A stretch of DNA of 63,247 nt, counting the filler, from Octopus bimaculoides (lineage: Eukaryota), in assembly GCF_001194135.2 (NCBI RefSeq). It is 4 parts of 4 records of this genome, joined end to end, with 100 filler letters (N's around TTAATTAATTAA, not from the genome) between each part and the next. Parts side by side here need not be neighbours in the genome. Positions count along the whole stretch, not along the records: positions 52,412 to 60,308 come from NC_068986.1; 3 more parts are not named here. One strand, written 5' to 3'. Of this stretch, positions 9,979-60,989 are shown piece after piece. Position numbers and translations under genes: made by a program. A model generated the notes under the pieces. It was given only the letters and a program-made list of their open reading frames with translations. It had not been told where the DNA came from and ran no database searches. How positions within the stretch are numbered: the stretch's first letter is position 1; each line of letters starts with the position of its first letter.

Positions 9979-10256
9979 NNNNNNNNNNNNNNNNNNNNNN
10001 NNNNNNNNNNNNNNNNNNNNNNNNNNNNNNNNNNNNNNNNNNNNNNNNNNNNNNNNNNNNNNNNNNNNNNNNNNNNNNNNNNNNNNNNNNNNNNNNNNNN
10101 NNNNNNNNNNNNNNNNNNNNNNNNNNNNNNNNNNNNNNNNNNNNNNNNNNNNNNNNNNNNNNNNNNNNNNNNNNNNNNNNNNNNNNNNNNNNNNNNNNNN
10201 NNNNNNNNNNNNNNNNNNNNNNNNNNNNNNNNNNNNNNNNNNNNNNNNNNNNNNNN

Positions 10257-14412: not shown

Positions 14413-15441
14413 ATCGTGCGGGTGTTAATCTGAAAAATTACAGATATGTGAAAAGTACCGACCCTGCCATCTGTTATAACTTTTGTTGTTCTGTTTGATA
14501 TATACATAGATTATGCCTACAAAGAAGAGAGTTTGCTGGGGAAAGAAAGCAACCGGTTTAAAATGACAGCAACAGACTACAGCAATTCACCACATTCCAG
14601 AAGCTACTTTGAACATAATGCAAAATGGTGCATCAACATCTTCTGCCCAATCTGATAGAATTCTGGCAAAACTGTGTAGCAAAAGATCGCCAGCAATTGC
14701 CGTCTTAGCTCCTGCGAAAAGGGATTATCCTGCTATGTATAATCAGGGTATCGCAAAAAGTTGTTTTGCACAAGCATTTCTATAGCCAATTAGATGGATG
14801 AAATTTACGTACGCTCAATAATTTTACGCAAAACAGCCTTTAGACTTTCCCTATTAATTTCATCATCTTTTGAATTATGAACATATTTACATCATAAGGG
14901 TTTTTTTGTTGTAAGGCTTTCTTTTTTAGTTGATTTTCACTTAGCAAGACTTATCGTAGATGGAGTAATAAGTCACACCTGGACAAGGTCAGGTTATACT
15001 GCTAGTAAATTAGTAAAGACAAGGCATTTTTTAAAGAAGTCTCTAAGTCTGAGTGCACCATTCTTCAAGGGGTCCACATTGGAAACTACTGGTCTAAAGC
15101 ACAATTTTTTCATGAGCCCTGAAAAATTACTGTGGTTCCCCAGTTTACTAGATTGCATCCATAAACCCCCAAATTCTTATATGGATCCCAGTTGAGAAGC
15201 TCTGTTTTAGAACTATGTGGGCATTGTCTGTTTTTCTTCCACTAGAGTGTCAGGTTGACCAATACTTTGTGAGTGAAATTTGAAAGGTGGAAACTTTAAG
15301 AAACTGTGGTGCATGTATGTATTTTCCCTGTCCTGACATGTGGACACTAACCAAAATTACCATCATACAAATGTCATCTTTTTACAATCTTCTGCAAAAG
15401 CAAACCAAATTATTGAGCAGTTTGTTGCAGTATGTAGATAT

Positions 15442-16400
15442 AAGGGTTGGCTGAAAAGTCCATGGGCTGACCAAGTCACTCCCAAGGAATGTGACCAAAT
15501 GAGGTTTATTTTTCAGTATAGTCTCCGTTGCAGTCCACACACTTCTTCCATTGGTGTTGCAGTGCTCGGATCCCATTGGTGAACAAACTTTTATCCTGTT
15601 GGTCACAAAAATCAACAACAGACATGATGTCATCATTACTGCAATGCTGGTTCTCAGTCGAGTGGTTTTTCATGTTGGGGATGATAGTCAAATGGGGCCA
15701 AATAAGGACAATAAGGAGGGTGATCAATCAGTTCAAAACCACAGTCATGCACAACATCCATTGAAACCAAAGAGTTGTGTGCTGGAGCATTGTCCTGATG
15801 AATCAAGACCCCTTTCATCAGTTTTCCTGGGCATTTGATCTTGATAGCTCTTCATAACTACTTCAGCAAGTTGGCATAGTACTCTCCATTGATGGTGTGG
15901 CCCTTCTGAAGATAGTCAATAAACAATGCTTTTTGTATTCCAAAAAGCTGAGGTCATTACCTTCCCTGCAGATGAAACAACTTTGGCCTTCTTTGGAATA
16001 GGTGAAGAGGAGTGCTTCCACTATATGAATTTTCTTTTCGTCTCTGACTCAAATTGGTAAATCTGACACTCATCATGAGTTTGGAAACATTAAAGGAAAC
16101 TAGCTGGATCTGCCTCAAACAATATCAGGTTTTCCTGTGATGTGATCAGCCTGGTACACTTTTGATCAGATGTTTGAAGACAAGACACCCACTGAGCAGA
16201 AACCTTCATCATACCAAGTTCATTGTACTGAATATTCTTTATTCTCTCATGGGATATGCTAACAGCATAGACTATTTGATTTATAATCAATCACCTGTCA
16301 TCTTTCACCTTGTGGGGAACACAATGTTTTCCTCAGTGGTGGCATTTGCAGGATGTCCAGATTTTGAGTCACCTTTAAGACTCTCCCTTCCTCTCCTAAA
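15442..16400 (-). mobile_element. Decayed mariner transposon
   Basis: End is tataagggttggctgaaaagt. Minus frames give GIRALQHQWKKCVDCNGDYTEK and KVSAQWV..LTSDQKCTR remnants. Confidence 0.8.
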
Positions 16401-18057: not shown

Positions 18058-18944
18058 GTTAGTGAACTGTTTCACTTCAATTTTGTGACTTTTCAGTAAT
18101 ATATTTATTATATTTTCAGCTTAAGACAACAGAAAAGCAGAAGGGGTAGAAGTACTGGTTTAGATACTTTACACCCCACCAGAGATTAATAAAATAAGTA
18201 GTATGAGATTTTTATCTTAACACAAACCGATAATCCACAGACACACAGTAATGTATGTTTCCATTGTCTTTACCCACTGGTGTGGTTTCTTTATAAGTGA
18301 CTATTTTGCCCTTTAAGTGTTGGTTGTCCACACAATCTGCTCACCAAGAAACTGGTCACTGTATGGAGCAGTTTAATTACTGATCTTGAGACAGGTTCAA
18401 AATGTATTTGACAACAGAGTTTACAGTTAGAATACTTATGTGTGTCATAATAATAGTTGTTTTAATAACCATTTCATAGTAGTATCAATAGTATGTGTTA
18501 ACACACTGATAACAGGATCTACAGTTAGAATCTGTATTATTCTCCTTGTCACAACATATGGCATAAAATCAAAGACATAATCAAACTCGAAACAAGTTCA
18601 AGTGTTAACTTTTAACAAACTTAGTTATAGAATAACTGAAGATATCAAAATCTTTAACATAATGAAACAATGTTTTGAAAATGCATAAATTTAAAATTCA
18701 AAATAGAAATAACAACATTCATAAAACCTGAAGAGTTTCCATGGATCAACTAGTAATTATATTTTATTAGCAGTGACCTTCTCTACACAGTAGTACTTAC
18801 TATGAACCACTGAATAATATGAATGGATTAATATATAAATGTATTTTGTAAATTTGAATTTTTTTGGGTTTTTTTTTTTTAAATAGTTACAATATAAAAT
18901 TTATTTCTCTAATCTCACAATGATAGGCATTTGTGTAGCTGAAA

Positions 18945-20071: not shown

Positions 20072-22930
20072 ACATGAAAAAATGTGAACAAGAGAAATAA
20101 TATTCTTAAGTTTATAAACCTGGAAAAGTACAGGACAAGTTATTACATCTGGTAAAGTACAGAACAAGAAAAGTTTTACTTAAAATATTGCAGCTAAGGA
20201 TAACATTTCAAATAAAATATTTAGATTTAGAAAATAATAGCTTTTATTAAAACTAAAAATTTTATTACAAGTTATTACTTCTATTTGTTATTACTTGTTA
20301 CTTCTATTAAAAAAATTAAAATAACTCAATTAAAATATTTTTTGCACTTCAAAAAAAATTCAATTTTTTAATTATTAATTGATAATTCAAAATTTGAAAA
20401 TATGTTATAAAAAATAATAGTAGTGCATAATTAGTACAATAAATAGAATAATACAAAAATTAATTATATATTACAGTAAAATCTACCTATAACTGCAAAT
20501 TCACAGTAAAATTTGCTTGAGTTATTGCCATGTCTTCACATTTTTAGTCTTGTCTCATGCCTATTTTTTACATAATGAATTTGCCTACCATATATACTAT
20601 TCTATTTTGCATAAAACTTTAGCTATATTGGTACTTCTGGATCTTATTTTTTAAGTATTCTAGTGTGTCAATACTTTAACAAAATGATGGTACTTTTTTT
20701 AATTATAACGTTACTTTGTAAATTAAAATCAAATAATTTTAAATTTTCAAATTTTCTCCTTAGCTGCAATATTTTAAGCAAAAATTTTATTGTTCTGTAC
20801 TTTAACAGATATAACAACTTGTCCAGAACTTTTCCAGATTTATAAGCTTAAGAATATTATTTCTCTTGCTCACATTTTTCCATGTTATCCATATTTTTTC
20901 CAGGCTATGCTATTATGCTAATTAATAATGTGTCAATAATTTAAGATTTTACCTTATTGAAAATTAAAGTTGATAAACTTTCAAAGAGCAACAGCTACTG
21001 ATATTACCCATCCACACCAAATTAATAGCATCTTGTGATTGCACCATGGCTCACCAATCAGTTACAAACAACAAGATCCAAAAACCATCAGTTACCAGGC
21101 TCACCTTAAATAATCTAGATCTATCAATGATTGAATACAACAGTAATTATAAAAGCATATCTGATATACACAAGTGAAAATTACCTACATTCCCATAATA
21201 CAAAATCTGATATGTGAAAATCCCTTTAAATTAATTTCAATATTGAATAATAAGTTTAGAATATAATCACTTTATAACAATGCCTTTTCTGGACAGCCTT
21301 ACTACATGCCTTCAGGTCTGCCTATAGAGACACAGCCAAAAATGACTATATTTTTTCCCCAATGAAATTAGATGTGTATATCTGAAGCATATAACACATT
21401 AATGAACTAGCCTGATTAAATAATTAGCTAAAAAGAAAAAGGTAAGCAACTAAAAAGAAATTAGCAAAAAAAAAAAAAAAAGCAGAAAGCAAGTAAGGCT
21501 GAAAGAGAAAATTAATAATAAAAGTTAAACTTAAGTGCAATAGCATATTGAAAATAACTTTATTAATTAAGTATCAAAGTTAAAAAATAAGTTGTTGAAT
21601 TTTGACTAATGCCTTTAATGAACAGCCTTACAACATGACTTCAGTGCTGCCCATAGAGACACAGCCAGAAATGTCTATCAAGTGAATTTTGAATTTTAAA
21701 GAAAATAAAGATAAAATAAAGTTATTTTTTTATGCAAATTTATTTTCTTGCAGTTATTAATAAATTATATGCATTTTTATAAGCAAAAAATTATTGATTT
21801 CATAACAAAGAACAACAACTACAATATAATCATCATCTTGAATTTGCAACATGGCTCACCAAACAATGACAAACTGCAAGGTCCCAAAATTTTCAGTGAC
21901 CAGGCTCACCTTAAGTCACGTAGATCTTGAGTTAATGAAAATATAATTGTTGCTAATTGAAATGAAAAATAAACACTTGTGTTATGTAATAAATTTAATT
22001 TAATTAACAATGGTCAATGACATGTAATTTATTAAAGCATATAAATAACTTCATTGCTAATAAATTTAAAATTAAAATTAAAAGTTATATAAAATATAAT
22101 CACTTTAAATTGTGCCTTTTCTGAACACCCTAACTACATGATTCAGTACTGCTCATAGAGACATAGTCACAAGTGGCTATATTTTACTGAATAATTTAGG
22201 TTGTTTAAAACAAAAATTACTAAGCAGTTATTTATAAAAGCAAATAATCCCCCAAACCTTTCATTGGAAAACTGAAAAACTGGATTGTTAAACAAACTTG
22301 TTTACTTTATTTTAAATTTGGAGTATTAAGAATCCCAATGCGAAAGTAGATTAATTGTCAATGAAATTATGAATATGAAAGATTTATGAGTGTGTAAATT
22401 TTATTTTTTAATTGATATACAAAAACAAAAAAAAAATATGTAATTTAATGGGACCAAAACTATGAAATTCCTTGTGGTGTCATTGATGCCAGTGACATTA
22501 AAAGTCCCCTTATAGAACTATATTCATAAAAATTTATAGAACTCATAACGTTTTTCTTTTAGAACTTCATTGCATGAGACTGAGACCATGAAATTCCTTG
22601 AATTGAGCTCTATCATTTAAGCTAATTAAAATATAGTTTGTTTTTAAAATAAAAAAAGTTAATTATACTTAAATCCAATGTTATGCCTTATATTTTATTT
22701 CATATTTTACCTCACAACTTTTTTGATACAAATTTTTGTTGCATGGGACAAAAACTATAAAATTCCTCAAGCTTTCTTTCATCTTTTAAGCTAAGATAAA
22801 TATATTTTGCTTTTAAAATAAAAAAGTTATTTAGATCTAAACTTGATTGGAGGCGTTTCTTACTCTCCTATAACATTGCTACAAATTTTGATGCAAACTT
22901 TTTTCTACTGGACCAAATCTCAATTTTTTT
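20072..22930. repeat. AT-rich modular foldback-type dispersed repeat, copy 1
   Basis: About 150 bp inverted repeat (about 20072-20220 vs 20755-20900), followed by repeated modules. 20072-21560 is homologous to 58285-59570. Confidence 0.8.
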
Positions 22931-52411: not shown

Positions 52412-52489
<78 letters not shown>

Positions 52490-52499
52490 GAGAGAGAGT

Positions 52500-52541
<42 letters not shown>

Positions 52542-52918
52542 TGTACTTGTGTGTCTGTGTTTATCCCTCCGCCACCACCAATATTTGTGAGTGTACGTCC
52601 CCGTAACCTAGTGGTTCGGCAATCGTGGATTTTCTTTGTCAAAAGTCCTTTAAGGCAGTGCTTAAACATGACGGCAGTCATGCTCTACTTAAGAAATACT
52701 AAGCAGTTTGAGGTTTGCTTCCCTGGAGAAGAAACAAACACGCTTTATATATAAATAAAATAGGGACTTTAACAGAATTAATATTCAACTGGAAATGCTA
52801 GGGGTTTGTATTTTCACATCTGGATTAGAGTTAACTACAGTTCAATTTAAAACTGAAGAGGAAGTGTAACAAGGACGACGCAACAATGATATGGAAATAA
52901 TGTAAAATATGAGCTAAA

Positions 52919-53309
52919 CTGTTTGTTGTTGTTGGCACTCCGTCGCTTACCACGTCGAGGGTTCCAGTTGATCCGATCAACAGAACAGCCTGCTCGTGAA
53001 ATTAACGTGCAAATGGCTGAGCACTCCACAAAAACGTATACCCTTAACGTAGTTCTCGTGGATTTTCAGCGTGACACAGTGTGACAAGGCTGACCCTTTG
53101 AATTATAGGCACAACAGAAACAGGAAGTAAGAGTGAGAGAAAGTTGTGGTGGAAGAGTACAGCAGGGTGCGACACCATCTCCTGCCGGAGCCTCGTAGAG
53201 CTTTATGAGTTTTCGCTCAATAAACACTCACAACGCCCGGTCAGGGAATCGAAACCGTGATCCTATGACCGTGAGTCCGATGCCCTAACCACTGGGCCAT
53301 TGCGCCTCC
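52919..53309 (-). mobile_element. Full-length tRNA-derived SINE (same family as 41990) with 12 bp TSD
   Basis: TSD atatgagctaaa at 52907-18 and 53310-21. (ACA)n tail. Confidence 0.95.
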
Positions 53310-53366
53310 ATATGAGCTAAATTAAATAGCTTCAAATATATACTTACTGACGTAAACATATTCCAC

Positions 53367-53495
53367 CTGATTTTGATGAGATATCAACGCGTTTAATTCC
53401 CAAATATTTGCACTCGTGAGTCCAGCATATACCGTTTTCGAAGGTCACCCAAGTTGTATCTTTCCTAATACACGTACCATCTTCCCTCCGACAAT
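53367..53495 (-). CDS. Cys-rich gene exon, module 2 (CRREDGTCIRKDTTWVTFENGICWTHECKYLGIKRVDISSKS)
   Basis: Acceptor gttttcttatcaacaacag and donor g|gtggaa (alternative ca|gtaagt at 53348). Phase 1-1, 129 bp. Confidence 0.7.
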
Positions 53496-53544
53496 CTGTT
53501 GTTGATAAGAAAACGAACAATGTATTGATCATTGTGTTATAAAT

Positions 53545-54680
53545 TTTACTCGTTTCAGTCATTTGACTGCGGCCATGCTGGAGCACCGCCTTTAGTCGAG
53601 CAAATCGACCCCGGGACTTATTCTTTGTAAGCCTAGTACTTATTCTATCGGTCTATTTTTGCCGAACCGCTAGGTTACAAGGACATAAACACACCAGCAT
53701 CGGTTGTCAAGCGATGGTGGAGGGACAAACACAGACACACAAACACACATACATATATATATATATATANNNNNNNNNNNNNNNNNNNNNNNNNNNNNNN
53801 NNNNNNNNNNNNNNNNNNNNNNNNNNNNNNNNNNNNNNNNNNNNNNNNNNNNNNNNNNNNNNNNNNNNNNNNNNNNNNNNNNNNNNNNNNNNNNNNNNNN
53901 NNNNNNNNNNNNNNNNNNNNNNNNNNNNNNNNNNNNNNNNNNNNNNNNNNNNNNNNNNNNNNNNNNNNNNNNNNNNNNNNNNNNNNNNNNNNNNNNNNNN
54001 NNNNNNNNNNNNNNNNNNNNNNNNNNNNNNNNNNNNNNNNNNNNNNNNNNNNNNNNNNNNNNNNNNNNNNNNNNNNNNNNNNNNNNNNNNNNNNNNNNNN
54101 NNNNNNNNNNNNNNNNNNNNNNNNNNNNNNNNNNNNNNNNNNNNNNNNNNNNNNNNNNNNNNNNNNNNNNNNNNNNNNNNNNNNNNNNNNNNNNNNNNNN
54201 NNNNNNNNNNNNNNNNNNNNNNNNNNNNNNNNNNNNNNNNNNNNNNNNNNNNNNNNNNNNNNNNNNNNNNNNNNNNNNNNNNNNNNNNNNNNNNNNNNNN
54301 NNNNNNNNNNNNNNNNNNNNNNNNNNNNNNNNNNNNNNNNNNNNNNNNNNNNNNNNNNNNNNNNNNNNNNNNNNNNNNNNNNNNNNNNNNNNNNNNNNNN
54401 NNNNNNNNNNNNNNNNNNNNNNNNNNNNNNNNNNNNNNNNNNNNNNNNNNNNNNNNNNNNNNNNNNNNNNNNNNNNNNNNNNNNNNNNNNNNNNNNNNNN
54501 NNNNNNNNNNNNNNNNNNNNNNNNNNNNNNNNNNNNNNNNNNNNNNNNATATATACGACGGACTTCTTTCAGTTTCCGTCTACCAAATCCACTCATAAGT
54601 CTTTGGTCGGCCCGAGGCTACAGTAGAAGACACTTGCCCAAGGTGTCACGCAGTGGGACTGAATCCGGAACCATGTTAAG
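53545..54680 (-). mobile_element. SINE with internal microsatellite spanning an assembly gap
   Basis: Same two halves as 47040-47420, separated by (TA)n and Ns. Confidence 0.85.
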
Positions 54681-55279
54681 TCGATTAAAATGACTCTAAT
54701 GCTTAGACTGGTACTTATTTTATCGATCTGGAAGGGATAAAATGGAAAGTCGACCTCGGCGAATTTTAAATGCAAATCAGAAATCTAGAAGCTATTTTAT
54801 CGATCGCCATTGCCGAACCGCTAAGTTACGGGGACATTTTATCGGTCTCCTAAAGAACTAAATTTAGTATCTTGTATACTATGTGGTTCAGCGAAGCTGG
54901 TCCCCACCAGTATCGGCGCAATGAGAAGTTTATCAATTTCCCGTAATTACGATTCTATTATCTCACTCGAAACGTTAGTGCACCAGCGAAAATGCTTTGC
55001 AGTATTCAGCTACATTTCTTTACGCAATGCGATCATACCCTACTGTGTTAGACATTACCTTTCGTTAGCTGAGTTCAATAAACTAAGGATCCGCCGTTTA
55101 CTGCGTAGTTGAGGCACATCAATCTCACAGTTAACTCGGGTAGATGGTCAGTAATTAACAGTTACCGAACAAGACCTATCGTATTCAAAAAAAAATGCAA
55201 ATATAAACCATCATTGAGATTTTGGTATTTCAATACATGTAGTGAAGAGAGGGAATTAAAATTTTCTTTGTCAACTTAC

Positions 55280-55417
55280 ACACAGAATTTGTAATTATTT
55301 GCCATTGAACTACACCAATAAGCTCACAGCTTTTCCAGGCACAGCTAGCTGTTGTCTTTTCAAACCATCTTTGCTTGTTTTTGCGGCATTTATTCCCGTA
55401 GAAACATCCATGACACT
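55280..55417 (-). CDS. Cys-rich gene exon, module 1 (CHGCFYGNKCRKNKQRWFEKTTASCAWKSCELIGVVQWQIITNSV)
   Basis: Acceptor ttttttttatttag and donor t|gtaagt. Phase 1-1, 138 bp. Same Cys/Trp spacing as the 53367 exon. Confidence 0.75.
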
Positions 55418-55840
55418 CTAAATAAAAAAATATATATATATTTCAATATCTACTAATCAGTATTATATAGTGGAAATTTTCTTAGGTAGATTTATTATAA
55501 ATTAAGAGAAAGTAAACTTGGTTCCGATAGCACGCAACTTATATAATAATGCTTAGATAATAACTTTTGTTCTTTTTTTTCCAATCCGTATATGAAATTT
55601 AGTCGGATCAGTTACCTCTATTTCCAGTCCTGTTTTGATAAAAAGATAAACGTGTGAGGAGTATATTGATACCAATTTAATGAACAGATACGTTCTTCTC
55701 CTACCCACGAAAGTGACTTAAACAACACAAAAGATTTTGATGTGAAGTGCTAAATCCCATAATGTACAGGAAACTCTGGTATTCAGGTTTTGGTATAGGC
55801 GTTGTTTGCTGGTTAGAATTCGTGAACCCTAAATGATAAA

Positions 55841-55900
<60 letters not shown>

Positions 55901-56626
55901 NNNNNNNNNNNNNNNNNNNNNNNNNNNNNNNNNNNNNNNNNNNNNNNNNNNNNNNNNNNNNNNNNNNNNNNNNNNNNNNNNNNNNNNNNNNNNNNNNNNN
56001 NNNNNNNNNNNNNNNNNNNNNNNNNNNNNNNNNNNNNNNNNNNNNNNNNNNNNNNNNNNNNNNNNNNNNNNNNNNNNNNNNNNNNNNNNNNNNNNNNNNN
56101 NNNNNNNNNNNNNNNNNNNNNNNNNNNNNNNNNNNNNNNNNNNNNNNNNNNNNNNNNNNNNNNNNNNNNNNNNNNNNNNNNNNNNNNNNNNNNNNNNNNN
56201 NNNNNNNNNNNNNNNNNNNNNNNNNNNNNNNNNNNNNNNNNNNNNNNNNNNNNNNNNNNNNNNNNNNNNNNNNNNNNNNNNNNNNNNNNNNNNNNNNNNN
56301 NNNNNNNNNNNNNNNNNNNNNNNNNNNNNNNNNNNNNNNNNNNNNNNNNNNNNNNNNNNNNNNNNNNNNNNNNNNNNNNNNNNNNNNNNNNNNNNNNNNN
56401 NNNNNNNNNNNNNNNNNNNNNNNNNNNNNNNNNNNNNNNNNNNNNNNNNNNNNNNNNNNNNNNNNNNNNNNNNNNNNNNNNNNNNNNNNNNNNNNNNNNN
56501 NNNNNNNNNNNNNNNNNNNNNNNNNNNNNNNNNNNNNNNNNNNNNNNNNNNNNNNNNNNNNNNNNNNNNNNNNNNNNNNNNNNNNNNNNNNNNNNNNNNN
56601 NNNNNNNNNNTAAATACATGTTTTAC

Positions 56627-56670
56627 CTATGAATTTGTGTGTGTAAATTGGGAATGCATACAACGTTTCT
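56627..56670 (-). CDS. Candidate linker exon of the Cys-rich gene (ETLYAFPIYTHKFI)
   Basis: Long pyrimidine tract then cag, with donor g|gtaaaa. Phase 2 in, phase 1 out exactly bridges 59730 and 55417, but it requires skipping an AG 5 nt upstream. Confidence 0.35.
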
Positions 56671-56740
56671 CTGCCCTAATTGTACGGAAAACACTCGGCG
56701 AGAAATGGGAAAAAATTTTAAGAAAGAAGAAAAAAAAAAC

Positions 56741-56789
<49 letters not shown>

Positions 56790-56792
<3 letters not shown>

Positions 56793-57240
56793 GAGAAATG
56801 GTGATGGAGCTGTTAAGGATGCAGAACAGGAACTTTATACAGTGAACCCTGATACTGTATTGGGTGGACATGCAGGGGAAATGAACCAACTAGATAATGA
56901 ATTGCTTGCAATCCAAGGACGGATCACGGAGGGTGTAACACTAACAAATGATCTTGTCCGAGCTATTGCTGAGAAGAAATCACAACTTAAGAAAACAAAA
57001 AATGGTGGAGCAAAAGAACCATGGTGGAAAAGACGCATTGTAAGCGACATAATGCGGGAAAGTTAAGGTCTAGGAAAAATCGAGCAATGGTTAAGGGGAA
57101 ACTGGGAAAAATTAGAGAAGGAATATAAAATACGGAAAAACAGGTTTGATGCTGTAATAGAACAGTTAAAACAGAGGATCATGGCAACAAGCCAGAAGAT
57201 CAGGAGATTTGTGAAAAGAAGTAAGCATTTCGAGGAATTT
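56790..57240 (+). mobile_element. R4/Dong-like LINE N-terminal fragment directly after (TAA)n
   Basis: TNDLVRAIAEKKSQLKKTKNGGAKEPWWKRRI...LEKEYKIRKNRFDAVIEQLKQRIMATSQKIRRF. Confidence 0.7.
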
Positions 57241-57784
57241 GATTAGATAATTAGGTCAGCATGACCTTGAAAATTTTGATTTTTATTACAAGGAAATATC
57301 ATTTCTGTAGCCTAACCCAAAGGAGTCACCTAGATTGCTAATTTTAACAATTTTGTATTCTAAGGCAATCGCAGAAATGGCCAGTTGCTTCATCATCAAA
57401 TTCTATGTCTGAACATCAGAAGGTACGCATTTAAATCAAACCAGTCGACTTAGATCAATCTGTCCAATGAAGCAATTAATTACATCCATCGATAAACGCA
57501 CACTTTTTTACACCCACAGCTATTTATTTTGTTGATTATACTATATACACCCAGTCTCTACCACAAGTCTCTTTACACTCACAAACATAGTTATGTATAC
57601 CCATGTTCATTTATTTCTATAAAACTAAACGTGTATGCCAAGATGCTCATATTCATGAACACACATACACATGCGTGTGCATCCAATCGTCCATTCCAAT
57701 ACATTTTTACGCTCTAATTTTTTTTTTCAATTCCCGTATTATCTCCATTTAGAGATTCATGTAAGTCTACTCTCAAAAGTAAAT

Positions 57785-57945
57785 GTAGTGGCTGTGTTGA
57801 AAGAAGCATGGTTCCCAAGTACATGGTCCCGGATTAAGTGCCGCTGCTTCACACCTTGGGCTAGTGTCTTCTACTATTGCCTCGGGCCGACCAAAAGCTT
57901 GTGAGTGGATTTGGTATACAGAAACTGACAGAAGCCTACGGACCT
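57785..57945 (+). mobile_element. SINE head (family of 36367)
   Basis: gtggctgtgttg...caccttgggctagtgtcttctactattgcctcgggccgaccaaaagcttgtgagtggatttgg. Confidence 0.8.
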
Positions 57946-58284
57946 TCGGTTTGTCTCCCGTTCGTTTTTACATCCAGTATACGTTACATCGTTTATTCAT
58001 TTATCTAGTAATAGAACGCAATAAACACCGAACTTGTATTATCATGCAAATTTATATATATATATATATATATCATATAATATAGGATAGATTCTTTATA
58101 AGAATTTATCAAGTAGTCAGCGTGACAAAACCTCATAATGAAAAAATAACGAAAAATTTCGTAATGAAAAAATTCATCGTTTCTTCATAGATATATTTAA
58201 TTATATATAAAGGGNNNNNNNNNNNNNNNNNNNNNNNNNNNNNNNNNNNNNNNNNNNNNNNNNNNNTATATATATATATTACGT

Positions 58285-59570
58285 AGAAAAATGCGAGCAT
58301 GAAAATAGTATTCTTAAGATTATAAACCTGGAAAAATACAGGACAAGTTATTGCACCTGTAAAAGTAAAGGACAAACTATTACTTCTCGTAAAGTAAAGA
58401 ATAAGAAACTTTTTACTTAAAATATTGCAGCAAAGAATGCCATTCTTCTAATTTATCACTCTTTACAGTTCTCGTCTTTTAAATTTATTGTACAAAACTG
58501 TTCAGCTAATTTGTAAGTTTGTCTAATTAGTCACATTTTTTAGGTATTTAAGGTAGTAAATTAGCCAAATTCTACTTAAGTAAGTATAGTGTTATTTGTA
58601 AACTATAATAAAATCAATTTTAATATTGAAATTTTTTTATTTTAGCTGCAATATTTTAAGTAAAAAGGTTCTTATTCTTTAGTTTACTGGAAGTAATAGC
58701 TTGTCCTCTACTTTTCCAGGTGTAATAACTTGTCCTGTACTTTTCCAGGTTTATAATCTTAAGAATACTACTTTTCATGCTCGCATTCTTCCAAGTAATC
58801 CATGATTTTTCCAGGCATTGCTATTATAAGATAATTAATAATGTGACAGTTAATAATTGAAGATTTTAACTTATAAAATACTGAAAGATAATATTTCAAT
58901 TTTTCCGTGTAAGTGATGGTAATATTTCAATTTTTTCATGTTTAATTTAGATATATGTTGTGATTTAATTATTTGATATTACCATCCACACCAAATTAAT
59001 GACAGGGAATTTTACCATTTTGTTGCTTGCAACATGGCTCACCAAAAGTTACAAGCAACAAGACCCCAAAACCATCAGTTACCTGGCTCACCTGAAGTAA
59101 CCTAGGTTTTGAGTTGGTGAGAATAGCACTGTCTGCTGCTAATCTAGATCTATGAATAATTATTCAATACAACAGTAATTATAAAAGCATATCAAATATA
59201 CACAAGTTAAAAATCCCTTCTAATGAATTTTGAAATTTAAAAAGTAAATTTAGAATATAAGCAATTTTAACCAATGCGCTTTTTCTAGATAACTTTACTA
59301 CATGCCTTCAGGTCTGCCCATAGAGACACAGCCAAAAATGACTATATTCCTGCCCCAATAAATTTAGATGCACATATCTAAAGCATATAACACATTAATG
59401 AACTAGCCTGATTAAATAAAAAGAAAAGTAAAGCAACTACAAAGGAGCAGAAAAAAAAAGAAAGCAGAAAGCAAGTTAATTTAAACTGAAAGAGAAAATT
59501 AATAACAAAAGTTTAACTTACCCTAATTCAACAGCATATTAAAAATAACTTTATCAAATACTTAATTAAG
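58285..59570. repeat. AT-rich modular foldback-type dispersed repeat, copy 2
   Basis: IR about 58285-58440 vs 58640-58800, then modules colinear with 20900-21560. Confidence 0.8.
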
Positions 59571-59729
59571 AAAATAAAATATATGAGAAGTAAAGTCAAA
59601 CTCGGTGGAATTAGAACTCAGAACAGACGCAACAACGTTAAGCATTTCGCCCGGCGCTGCGTTGGAATGCAACCACTCATTTTAGTAATATATACTTATC
59701 TTAACATTTTTGCTTGGAGCCGAACTTAC

Positions 59730-59847
59730 TTCCTCGCGTACTGACATGAAATTTCATGGCATTTCACCTCATAACATTTTTTTTCTAATTTTTGTTCAAT
59801 GCGACTAACGATTCTGAATTCATCTTGCATTATTCTATCATTGAAGC
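59730..59847 (-). CDS. Candidate upstream exon of the Cys-rich gene (FNDRIMQDEFRIVSRIEQKLEKKCYEVKCHEISCQYAR)
   Basis: Acceptor actttttgtag and donor aa|gtaagt. Only one frame is open. Phase 1 in, phase 2 out. Confidence 0.5.
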
Positions 59848-59962
59848 CTACAAAAAGTGTACTTTTATTTTAAAATGAAAAAAATTATGTTAACTGAAGA
59901 CGATTAGGTGGCTTACTGCCCCTCCTTTAGAACCCATATATTTTAATGTATATATTTTAATG

Positions 59963-60000
<38 letters not shown>

Positions 60001-60989
60001 TATTTATATAAGGGAATTACTATACAATAATGTCTCATGCTATGAGGGACTCTAAGGTCAGACTACCATAAAAAACACATTTTTACCGAACGCGAGGAGA
60101 CGCAACTCTCAAAGCCAACCCCTTAAAAACAGACTGAATTATAGATCATGATTTCGTAGTTATTGTAGTATTATACAACCTCTACTCGTCAGTATAATAT
60201 GGTCAAGAAAAATAGCAGTAAACAGAGAATCAACATACCAAACGAACATCGTGTATCCAATATAGTACATAGAAGACTGTTCATCGCTATTTGCCTATGT
60301 AAGTGGCGNNNNNNNNNNNNNNNNNNNNNNNNNNNNNNNNNNNNNNNNNNNNTTAATTAATTAANNNNNNNNNNNNNNNNNNNNNNNNNNNNNNNNNNNN
60401 NNNNNNNNATAAAAAAGCTTCTACCTGGTTGCTTAACATGCTAAAAATAGCAGCCAACCCCTACCTAAATTGCATGCTCATTCTACGTATTGTCCTAGAT
60501 TACCCCGAAATCTTTGATGATAGGTTTGCTGAATCAGGGTTGATTTGCATTTTGTCTATTTAATGAAAATAATCCTAACCTGGACCCTTGAAAATTTATC
60601 TCTGTAAAGTTTAATTCAAAGAAACTATTCTTCAGAAAAAAACAAGGAAAAATTCTCCTCTGTTCTGCAATTGGCAGTCATTGTTTACAATAATGCAGTG
60701 TATGAAAAAAATCAAGACTTTTCTTATTGTATAACATATTTAATATGTGAAGCGTTTAAAAGATAATACATATATATATGCAGAGATTTAAGGATGTGTT
60801 ATTCACTAAAGAATAATGTGTGGGGTTGTCAAGCAGAAGAGATTAAATATAGGGGTTCTTACACCATCGAAAGGAATCTACACTTGTAGTAGTGGAACAA
60901 AGAGAGGTAAAAATTGCACAAACAAAACAAGAAAATATAAACATTTTAAAATACTTTCGTCATATCTTCCATTGCACAAAGCGCAGGAA

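Follow-up and report, generated by a model that had tools for sequence, protein, structure and literature searches.

A gene family, known so far only from Octopus, encoding putative secreted proteins with two cysteine-rich modules and a predicted fibronectin type I finger-like fold

Positions 52412-60308 of the Octopus bimaculoides DNA analysed here (the window, a stretch of 63,247 nucleotides made of four parts of assembly GCF_001194135.2 joined end to end) come from NC_068986.1 and contain, on the minus strand, exons 2 and 3 of the annotated four-exon gene LOC128248056, each of which carries one cysteine-rich module. The product of this gene, P0001 (139 aa), is annotated as an “uncharacterized protein”. 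The piece is AT-rich (G+C content 34%) and matches CM046606.1 of Octopus bimaculoides assembly GCA_001194135.2 with 100% identity in four blocks and with gaps at the same places; the minus strand of the window corresponds to the plus strand of locus L001, L001 11362-19258. A preliminary description, made from the sequence of the region 53367-59847, had proposed that a gene on the minus strand encodes a secreted protein, rich in cysteine and restricted to one lineage, and the annotated gene, with relatives so far only in Octopus, bears this proposal out. The analyses performed make it probable, though well short of certain, that LOC128248056 is a real four-exon gene of a tandemly clustered family, so far confined to Octopus, and that it encodes a secreted two-finger binding or effector protein.

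The exon coordinates were taken from an exact spliced alignment of P0001 to L001 (Table 1). The product consists of an N-terminal hydrophobic leader, two duplicated Cys-rich modules of ~45 residues and a variable tail. Exon 2, whose translation E-CHGCFYGNKCRKNKQRWFEKTTASCAWKSCELIGVVQWQIITNSV-Y contains one conserved Trp and five Cys that do not vary in the family, is bounded by the pyrimidine-rich acceptor tatttttttatttag (…tttttttatttag, tttag) and the donor gtaagttg. Exon 3 encodes Y-CRREDGTCIRKDTTWVTFENGICWTHECKYLGIKRVDISSKSGGICLR-Q (translation from 53495 onward: CRREDGTCIRKDTTWVTFENGICWTHECKYLG..., CRREDGTCIRKDTTWVTFENGICWTHECKYLGIKRVDISSKSGGICLRQ) and lies between the acceptor tcttatcaacaacag and the donor CA/GTAAGT at 53348 (gtaagtat). 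P0001 reproduces exactly the 138-bp phase 1-1 module exon proposed at 55417-55280 as well as the junction 55280->53495, with one module per exon and both exons entered in phase 1, as had been read from the sequence. A search with the translation chained in the preliminary description returned one protein, P0001, which covers only the two module exons (68% of the query). Secretion is predicted from the signal peptide of exon 1, which could not be seen in the piece itself, since exon 1 lies ~1.3 kb past window position 60308, across a 1027-N gap; exons 1 and 4 are each separated from the piece by an assembly gap of >1 kb. In six related loci, DNA conservation, splice-site flanks included, amounts to 69-81% for exon 2 and 68-77% for exon 3, and homologues of intron 2 are 1.8-10.8 kb long.

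Table 1. Exons and introns of LOC128248056 and assembly gaps in the piece 52412-60308
Feature	Window position	L001 position	Strand in window	Length	Phase	Content
Exon 1		10001-10079		79 bp	0 to 1	Signal peptide MIMTRLFPFCFLFLTALTAFIEAHYV, starts MIMTRLFPFCFLFLTALTAFIEA...; outside the piece
Exon 2	55417-55280	16253-16390	minus	138 bp	1 to 1	Module 1
Exon 3	53495-53348	18175-18322	minus	148 bp	1 to 2	Module 2 and tenth Cys
Exon 4		20825-20879		55 bp	2 to 0	Tail (Q)KRDLPIANRSENQTSLL, then stop; outside the piece
Intron 1, 3' part	55418..60308		minus			Gaps 55901-56610 and 58215-58266, (ATT)n runs, SINE copies, inverted repeat, the two upstream exons of the earlier model (59830-59730 and 56670-56627, unsupported)
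Intron 2 (GT..AG)	53496..55279		minus			Gap 53770-54548; SINE copies and a (TA)n run border it
Intron 3, 5' part	52412..53347		minus			380-bp SINE copy and microsatellites
Assembly gap	53770-54548					In intron 2
Assembly gap	55901-56610					In intron 1
Assembly gap	58215-58266			52 N		In intron 1
SINE, short interspersed nuclear element.

Relatives of LOC128248056 form a compact and narrowly distributed family. An exhaustive HMMER search of 1.84 billion representatives returned 12 proteins at E <= 0.001, and the 11 relatives besides the query (E 1e-31 to 3e-4) are all from Octopus except for one spurious match, the Octopus proteins being called “uncharacterized”, apart from P0018. Similarity of P0001 to its paralogues ranges from E 1e-31 to 1e-10, and the members share 23-52% identity with P0001. 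A word-indexed protein search recovered only the product of LOC128248056 itself, and the same kind of search with alignments as queries recovered 5-6 members. The family includes at least nine O. bimaculoides loci (besides LOC128248056, the relatives are LOC128248057, LOC128248060, LOC128248175, LOC128248178, LOC106872057, LOC106872088, UniProt A0A0L8IDP9 and the 117-residue P0018) and two O. sinensis loci (LOC115212787 and LOC118763783). Six of the O. bimaculoides loci lie within 106.93-107.27 Mb (~340 kb) of one chromosome, on both strands.

The plan of exons 1-3 is common to all seven mapped genes, with a signal-peptide exon of phase 0-1, a module 1 exon of 123-144 bp in phase 1-1 and a module 2 exon with phase-1 entry. 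Five of the seven have a module 2 exon of 148-151 bp that leaves in phase 2 at the same position and is followed by a short variable tail; in LOC128248060 the reading frame ends in exon 3. The family can be described by an exon plan consisting of a signal-peptide exon, a phase 1-1 exon for module 1, a phase 1-2 exon for module 2 and a tail exon, and by the signature of a signal peptide followed by C-x-G-C-x5-C-x6-W-x-E-K-x5-C-x4-C and then C-x6-C-x6-W-x7/8-C-W-x3-C-x17-C, both of which LOC128248056 displays. The paralogue LOC128248178 (locus L006) is annotated with two isoforms: in X1, exon 3 (14680-14811, 132 bp, phase 1-1) ends at an earlier donor and the tenth Cys is dropped, while X2 reads through the tenth Cys. 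In one member of the family or more, the last disulfide may thus be switched on or off by alternative splicing.

Among the proteins retrieved, P0018 (UniRef, O. bimaculoides) is the closest relative of LOC128248056, at 52% identity, and bears the UniRef name “Pleiotrophin/Midkine N-terminal domain-containing protein”. This name was rejected, as the protein fails the Pfam and profile tests, and it looks like a propagated weak automatic match. The non-Octopus match, P0011 (421 aa, E = 1.9e-8; L008 5001-6266, ENA metagenome contig ERZ26165376), was also rejected as a relative: it lacks two scaffold Cys and consists of five near-identical units of ~76 residues, each weakly resembling C-W-T-H-E-C…S-G-G-I of module 2 at ~9.7 bits, so that the match was judged to be chance similarity inflated by repetition.

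The resemblance between the two modules is modest when they are taken in isolation and becomes clearer at the level of the family. Compared as two single sequences, they give a BLOSUM62 local score of 34, a weak result reached by 242 of 5000 composition-preserving shuffles, whereas a profile of ten module 1 sequences matches a profile of eleven module 2 sequences with P = 0.0021 over 38 columns, in the register C37=C81, W44=W88, C52=C96 and C57=C101. A hidden Markov model (HMM) of module 1, run against six-frame translations of all loci, retrieved seven true module 1 exons and then the module 2 exons of four relatives (E 0.007-0.11), with exon 3 of LOC128248056 itself ranking next (E = 1.3). 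The Cys of the pattern and both Trp are conserved in the paralogues, the module 1 Trp being missing only in LOC128248178, the most divergent member. Because of this conservation, the profile match and the HMM cross-matches, the repetition in LOC128248056 is, on sequence comparison, more than chance when the family is used, and the two modules probably arose by internal duplication. The C..C-x6-W-x7-C-x4-C register of the preliminary description is retained in the paralogues. Module 1 has five Cys (CHGC...) and not four, and each half has five in the family; the terminal Gly that had been assigned to both modules is conserved in module 2 and not in module 1. The notion of a gene built from cassettes needs to be narrowed to exactly two modules, no further copies having been found by a module-HMM search in 30 kb of L001. 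A “YSNKCGKNK” match 3 kb upstream in L001 was dismissed as chance, being preceded by a stop and lacking a module.

The pattern of conservation separates a fixed scaffold from a variable remainder. All ten Cys are invariant in every full-length product, and among six members compared the mature core has 16 invariant columns: the ten Cys, three Trp, G30, E46 and K47. Conservation is higher in the signal peptide than in the mature core, whose positions outside the scaffold change at about the rate of silent sites. Over a 95-codon core, the ratio of nonsynonymous to synonymous substitution rates (dN/dS, Nei-Gojobori) is 0.65-1.59 in pairwise comparisons and 1.04-1.59 for LOC128248056 against four O. 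bimaculoides paralogues, rising in the latter comparison to 1.36-2.13 when invariant columns are removed. The isoelectric point (pI) of the mature part is 8.9-9.6 in six of the 11 products examined, LOC128248056 having a value of 9.1.

Structure prediction for LOC128248056 depended strongly on the family alignment. From the single sequence, AlphaFold2 reached a mean predicted local distance difference test score (pLDDT) of 45; with the 12-sequence family alignment, pLDDT was 89-95 over approximately residues 31-100 and 82-85 out to residue 120, giving an all-beta model in which each module has five strands. For both modules the prediction is a fold like the fibronectin type I (FnI) finger, in which a two-stranded A/B hairpin packs on a three-stranded C/D/E sheet and the Trp lies on strand C. 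When this model was compared with the PDB by Foldseek, the top 16 ranks by E-value were all FnI module pairs or FnI-containing fibronectin fragments, among them 8-9FnI (3gxe, 3ejh), 4-5FnI (1fbr, 2rky) and 2-3FnI (2cku, 3cal), with a best E of 4.5e-4, a probability of 0.80-1.00 overall and 0.93-1.00 for the entries named, and 87-94 aligned columns.

FnI modules and the octopus family share a tandem arrangement of ~45-residue modules, stabilisation by disulfides and a G-x-x ahead of the strand C Trp, as well as one module per exon with entry in phase 1, which is also the arrangement of the fibronectin gene. The differences are equally specific. The octopus pattern is C-x6-C-x6-W-x7-C-x4-C with one extra Cys per half, against C1...C2-x-C3...C4 in fn1; strand D carries C-x4-C instead of C-x-C, a Cys is added on strand B, the position of the conserved fn1 Tyr is occupied by Cys or Val, and the D-E hairpin is longer. 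The octopus product is, moreover, a free-standing mollusc protein of ~100 residues, whereas FnI modules occur in large chordate mosaic proteins such as fibronectin, tPA (its finger) and factor XII. If the fn1 register obtained by profile comparison is right, the expected disulfide pairs are C31-C57, C37-C52, C74-C101 and C81-C96, leaving C28 and C119 to pair with each other. The failed profile match and the divergent Cys pattern mean that the family is not a member of fn1; the model rather suggests that a mollusc protein standing on its own carries FnI-like fingers of a divergent kind.

No existing Pfam family was matched at threshold by P0001 and nine relatives, in agreement with the earlier expectation of a module without a Pfam counterpart, and scans of the module peptides, of the 144-aa chain assembled earlier and of the ten members yielded only noise (Defensin_beta, E 0.08-2; VWC, E = 0.044; Nodulin_late and the like). 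Searches of PDB sequences with P0001 and the family profile gave zero matches at E <= 10. The families first thought of, VWC/SVWC and pacifastin, were not confirmed. Among ten members, only one paralogue gave a VWC (PF00093) score worth noting, and with 14.5 bits (E = 0.044) it stays below the cutoff of 27.6; the VWC motifs C-x2-C-x-C and C-C-x2-C are absent from the family alignment, and no VWC structure appears among the top 50 Foldseek matches. Still, VWC/SVWC domains share with the octopus family a secreted, Cys-rich character, about ten Cys and a conserved Trp ahead of a cluster of Cys. Their N-terminal subdomain is also finger-like, as this half of VWC resembles the FnI fold. The VWC/SVWC suggestion thus seems to have pointed to the right structural neighbourhood, the nearest structural relative of the predicted model being the FnI finger. 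Pacifastin, with its six-Cys inhibitor motif, was rejected owing to the lack of a Pfam match and to a different number and spacing of Cys.

Several results weigh against the interpretation of LOC128248056 as a finger-like, rapidly diversifying secreted effector. All dN/dS bootstrap intervals include 1, and relaxed constraint could produce the same values. Two members are acidic (pI 5.2 and 5.8), which implies that a general heparin-like charge mechanism is not universal in the family. The fold prediction rests on only 12 sequences and the Foldseek E-values are modest; the superpositions on FnI pairs have target-normalised template modelling (TM) scores of 0.43-0.53 and, except for two weaker matches, root-mean-square deviations of 4.6-6.4 Å. 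In P0001 and nine relatives, Pfam fn1 (PF00039, gathering score 27 bits) gave no match at E <= 10, while eight human FnI modules used as a control were confirmed as fn1 by Pfam with 142-233 bits. Comparison with the same eight modules by hhalign gave a hint and no more, module 2 reaching P = 0.038 and module 1 P = 0.044, and the four-Cys spacing of fn1, in which the Cys pair 1-3 and 2-4, is replaced by C-x6-C-x14-C-x4-C plus a fifth Cys per half. A search of the accessible literature on the family found no paper mentioning any member and no expression, tissue or proteomic record.

The gene structure initially proposed differs from the annotated one, and it is hardly tenable that it is correct. 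According to it, translation starts from an ATG at 59830 and proceeds over 59730->56670/56627->55417 through symmetric phase-1 cassettes to a 129-bp exon ending at 53367. Its four pieces do form one open frame with GT/AG sites, the two upstream exons 59830-59730 (CYEVKCHEISC) and 56670-56627 (44 bp) joining in frame with the module exons; a G/GTGGAA donor is present at 53367, and isoform X1 of the paralogue LOC128248178 does use an earlier phase-1 donor in exon 3. However, the upstream exons are absent from P0001, had no relatives in a protein search and show no DNA conservation in the six related loci, and the 5' model 59730->56670->55417 is left unsupported. The annotated product starts with a different exon 1, located elsewhere and outside the piece, whose signal peptide is conserved in all paralogues, and the earlier model, with the true first and last exons out of its reach, would have missed that signal peptide and yielded a cysteine-rich protein without one. 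As to the second module exon, described earlier as 129 bp long and of phase 1-1, the annotated donor at 53348 makes it 148 bp long, running from phase 1 to 2. The same donor position is found in five of six mapped relatives, the sixth ending its reading frame there, and the donor at 53367 is disfavoured because the invariant tenth Cys would be dropped. It is also very unlikely that LOC128248056 is an artefact of annotation or a duplicate in decay, which drifts neutrally within the tandem cluster and has no function as a gene. Such a copy would be in keeping with the dN/dS of 1.0-1.6 against paralogues with intervals that include 1, with the existence of the LOC128248056 protein, in the collection searched, only as an NCBI model without a transcript-derived copy, and with an assembly broken by gaps at the locus. 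On the other hand, the frame is intact over four exons, the splice sites are canonical and at conserved positions, and conservation extends to the signal peptide. The gene keeps all 16 residues that are invariant in the family despite ~0.5 nonsynonymous changes per site relative to the paralogues, which argues against a pseudogene.

With a real gene and a secreted product as the preferred reading, the origin of the predicted fold can be weighed. One possibility, which we put forward tentatively, is that the octopus modules are true, very divergent FnI-like fingers outside chordates, recruited in octopods into a tandem, rapidly diversifying two-finger secreted family, and that they make up a domain family not described before, used as a scaffold for recognition or effector functions, e.g., in saliva or venom, mucosal defence, or gamete and chemical signalling. 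It is likewise conceivable, if doubtful, that the octopus modules came to their finger-like fold by convergence or from an ancestor of the VWC/SVWC type, with no relation by descent to FnI modules. The missing fn1 match, the hhalign P of only 0.04, a Cys spacing unlike that of fn1 with five Cys per half and the weak VWC match of one paralogue (E = 0.044) all speak for such an origin, and small disulfide-rich beta modules often converge; against it, Foldseek ranks 1-16 list FnI pairs or FnI-containing fragments and no VWC, the octopus G-x-T-W falls on the G-D-T-W of fn1 in the weak hhalign register, which also aligns C74 and C101 with fn1 C1 and C3, and the one-module-per-exon plan with phase-1 entry is that of fibronectin. 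A further, unlikely alternative concerns function rather than descent: by analogy and not by family membership, the product could be a cytokine- or growth-factor-like ligand working like midkine or pleiotrophin, binding glycosaminoglycans and a receptor via disulfide-stapled beta domains and basic tails. Midkine and pleiotrophin are likewise small secreted proteins with ten Cys, two beta-sheet halves and basic tails, and the mostly basic pI, the Lys/Arg-rich tails, the RQKR site before the tail of LOC128248056 and the UniRef name of P0018 are compatible with this analogy. Yet the Cys are split 5+5 in the octopus family and 6+4 in midkine and pleiotrophin; none of ten members matched PTN_MK_N (PF05196) or PTN_MK_C (PF01091) in Pfam, where human MK and PTN controls scored 88-96 bits; the hhalign comparison gave P = 0.67; and no midkine or pleiotrophin structure occurs among the top 50 Foldseek matches. 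Signalling ligands are, besides, normally conserved, whereas this family has a dN/dS of ~1 and is found only in Octopus.

Under the preferred reading of a secreted two-finger protein, the leader would act as a signal peptide cleaved near IEA/HY, and the RQKR before the tail would be a furin-like convertase site. Once secreted, the mature protein would be a rigid binding module of two fingers, basic in most members, and an extracellular partner may be recognised via exposed hypervariable strands and loops, in the manner of FnI pairs, for which beta-strand addition is the mode of binding to fibrin, collagen and bacterial adhesins. Different paralogues may have diversified toward different targets. 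A fixed scaffold with a hypervariable surface, a conserved leader and tandem expansion is the pattern of venom peptides, antimicrobial and immune effectors, and reproductive proteins. In particular, conotoxin-type superfamilies and mollusc antimicrobial-peptide clusters resemble the octopus family in that the signal peptide is conserved and the Cys framework fixed while the mature region is hypervariable, with a dN/dS of about 1 or more, and in that the genes are clustered in tandem and taxonomically restricted; the octopus mature product differs in being larger, with ~95-115 residues and two folded domains, and there is no sequence relation. Because this combination of features recurs in LOC128248056 and its paralogues, analogy favours a role in recognition or as an effector that faces the environment, for instance in host defence, in saliva or venom, or in reproductive or chemical signalling, over a housekeeping one.

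The surroundings of the two module exons are rich in repeats. None of the three assembly gaps in the piece is touched by any exon, the exon-to-gap distance being at least 275 bp, and in the paralogues the two module exons are consecutive; the continuity of the LOC128248056 reading frame is therefore independent of the gaps. Every gap is bordered by repeat copies and simple repeats, (TA)n and (ATT)n, which probably account for the gaps. SINE-like interspersed repeats occupy 52930-53310, 53560-53769, 54549-54900 and 57780-58000, and many copies of them exist in related O. bimaculoides and O. sinensis loci, the best being 84-94% identical; for the intron 3 element, copies in L003 and L007 are 88-90% identical. 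The element at 52930-53310 begins with a tRNA-like stretch, although scans of the piece 52412-60308 for tRNAs (ARAGORN) and against Rfam made no call, this element included. In intron 1, an inverted repeat of ~161 bp (58278-58438 and 58639-58799, 90.7% identical, arms 200 bp apart) adjoins the 52-N gap and looks like a hairpin or an element resembling miniature inverted-repeat transposable elements. The same intron contains, on the plus strand of the window at 56842-57128, an open reading frame of 74 aa (…GGAKEPWWKRRIVSDIMRES) overlapped by one of 35 aa on the opposite strand; the pair could be a decayed mobile-element fragment, and DNA comparison found no copy of it among the other seven loci. 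Outside the piece, a short tblastn match at L001 30679-30810 (E = 0.016), reading …FHCVLHQQNLCAK…, is unrelated to the LOC128248056 family and resembles a hAT/FAM200-type transposase fragment.

Octopus genomes contain many lineage-restricted genes of unknown function, and LOC128248056 illustrates how such a gene can be given a testable identity. The novelty anticipated in the preliminary description does not lie in the gene itself, which is already annotated as “uncharacterized” and whose model is public; it lies in the family and the fold, that is, in the family definition, the scaffold, the exon plan, the cluster, the evolutionary rate and the predicted finger-like fold. An anonymous protein is thereby made accessible to experiment through a defined family, a ten-Cys scaffold, a confident predicted fold, an exon plan, a tandem cluster and a mode of evolution typical of recognition or effector proteins. 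To our knowledge, FnI modules are considered to be largely confined to chordates. Confirmation of the finger-like fold would extend the FnI architecture beyond this group and provide a compact, disulfide-stapled binding scaffold from a cephalopod.

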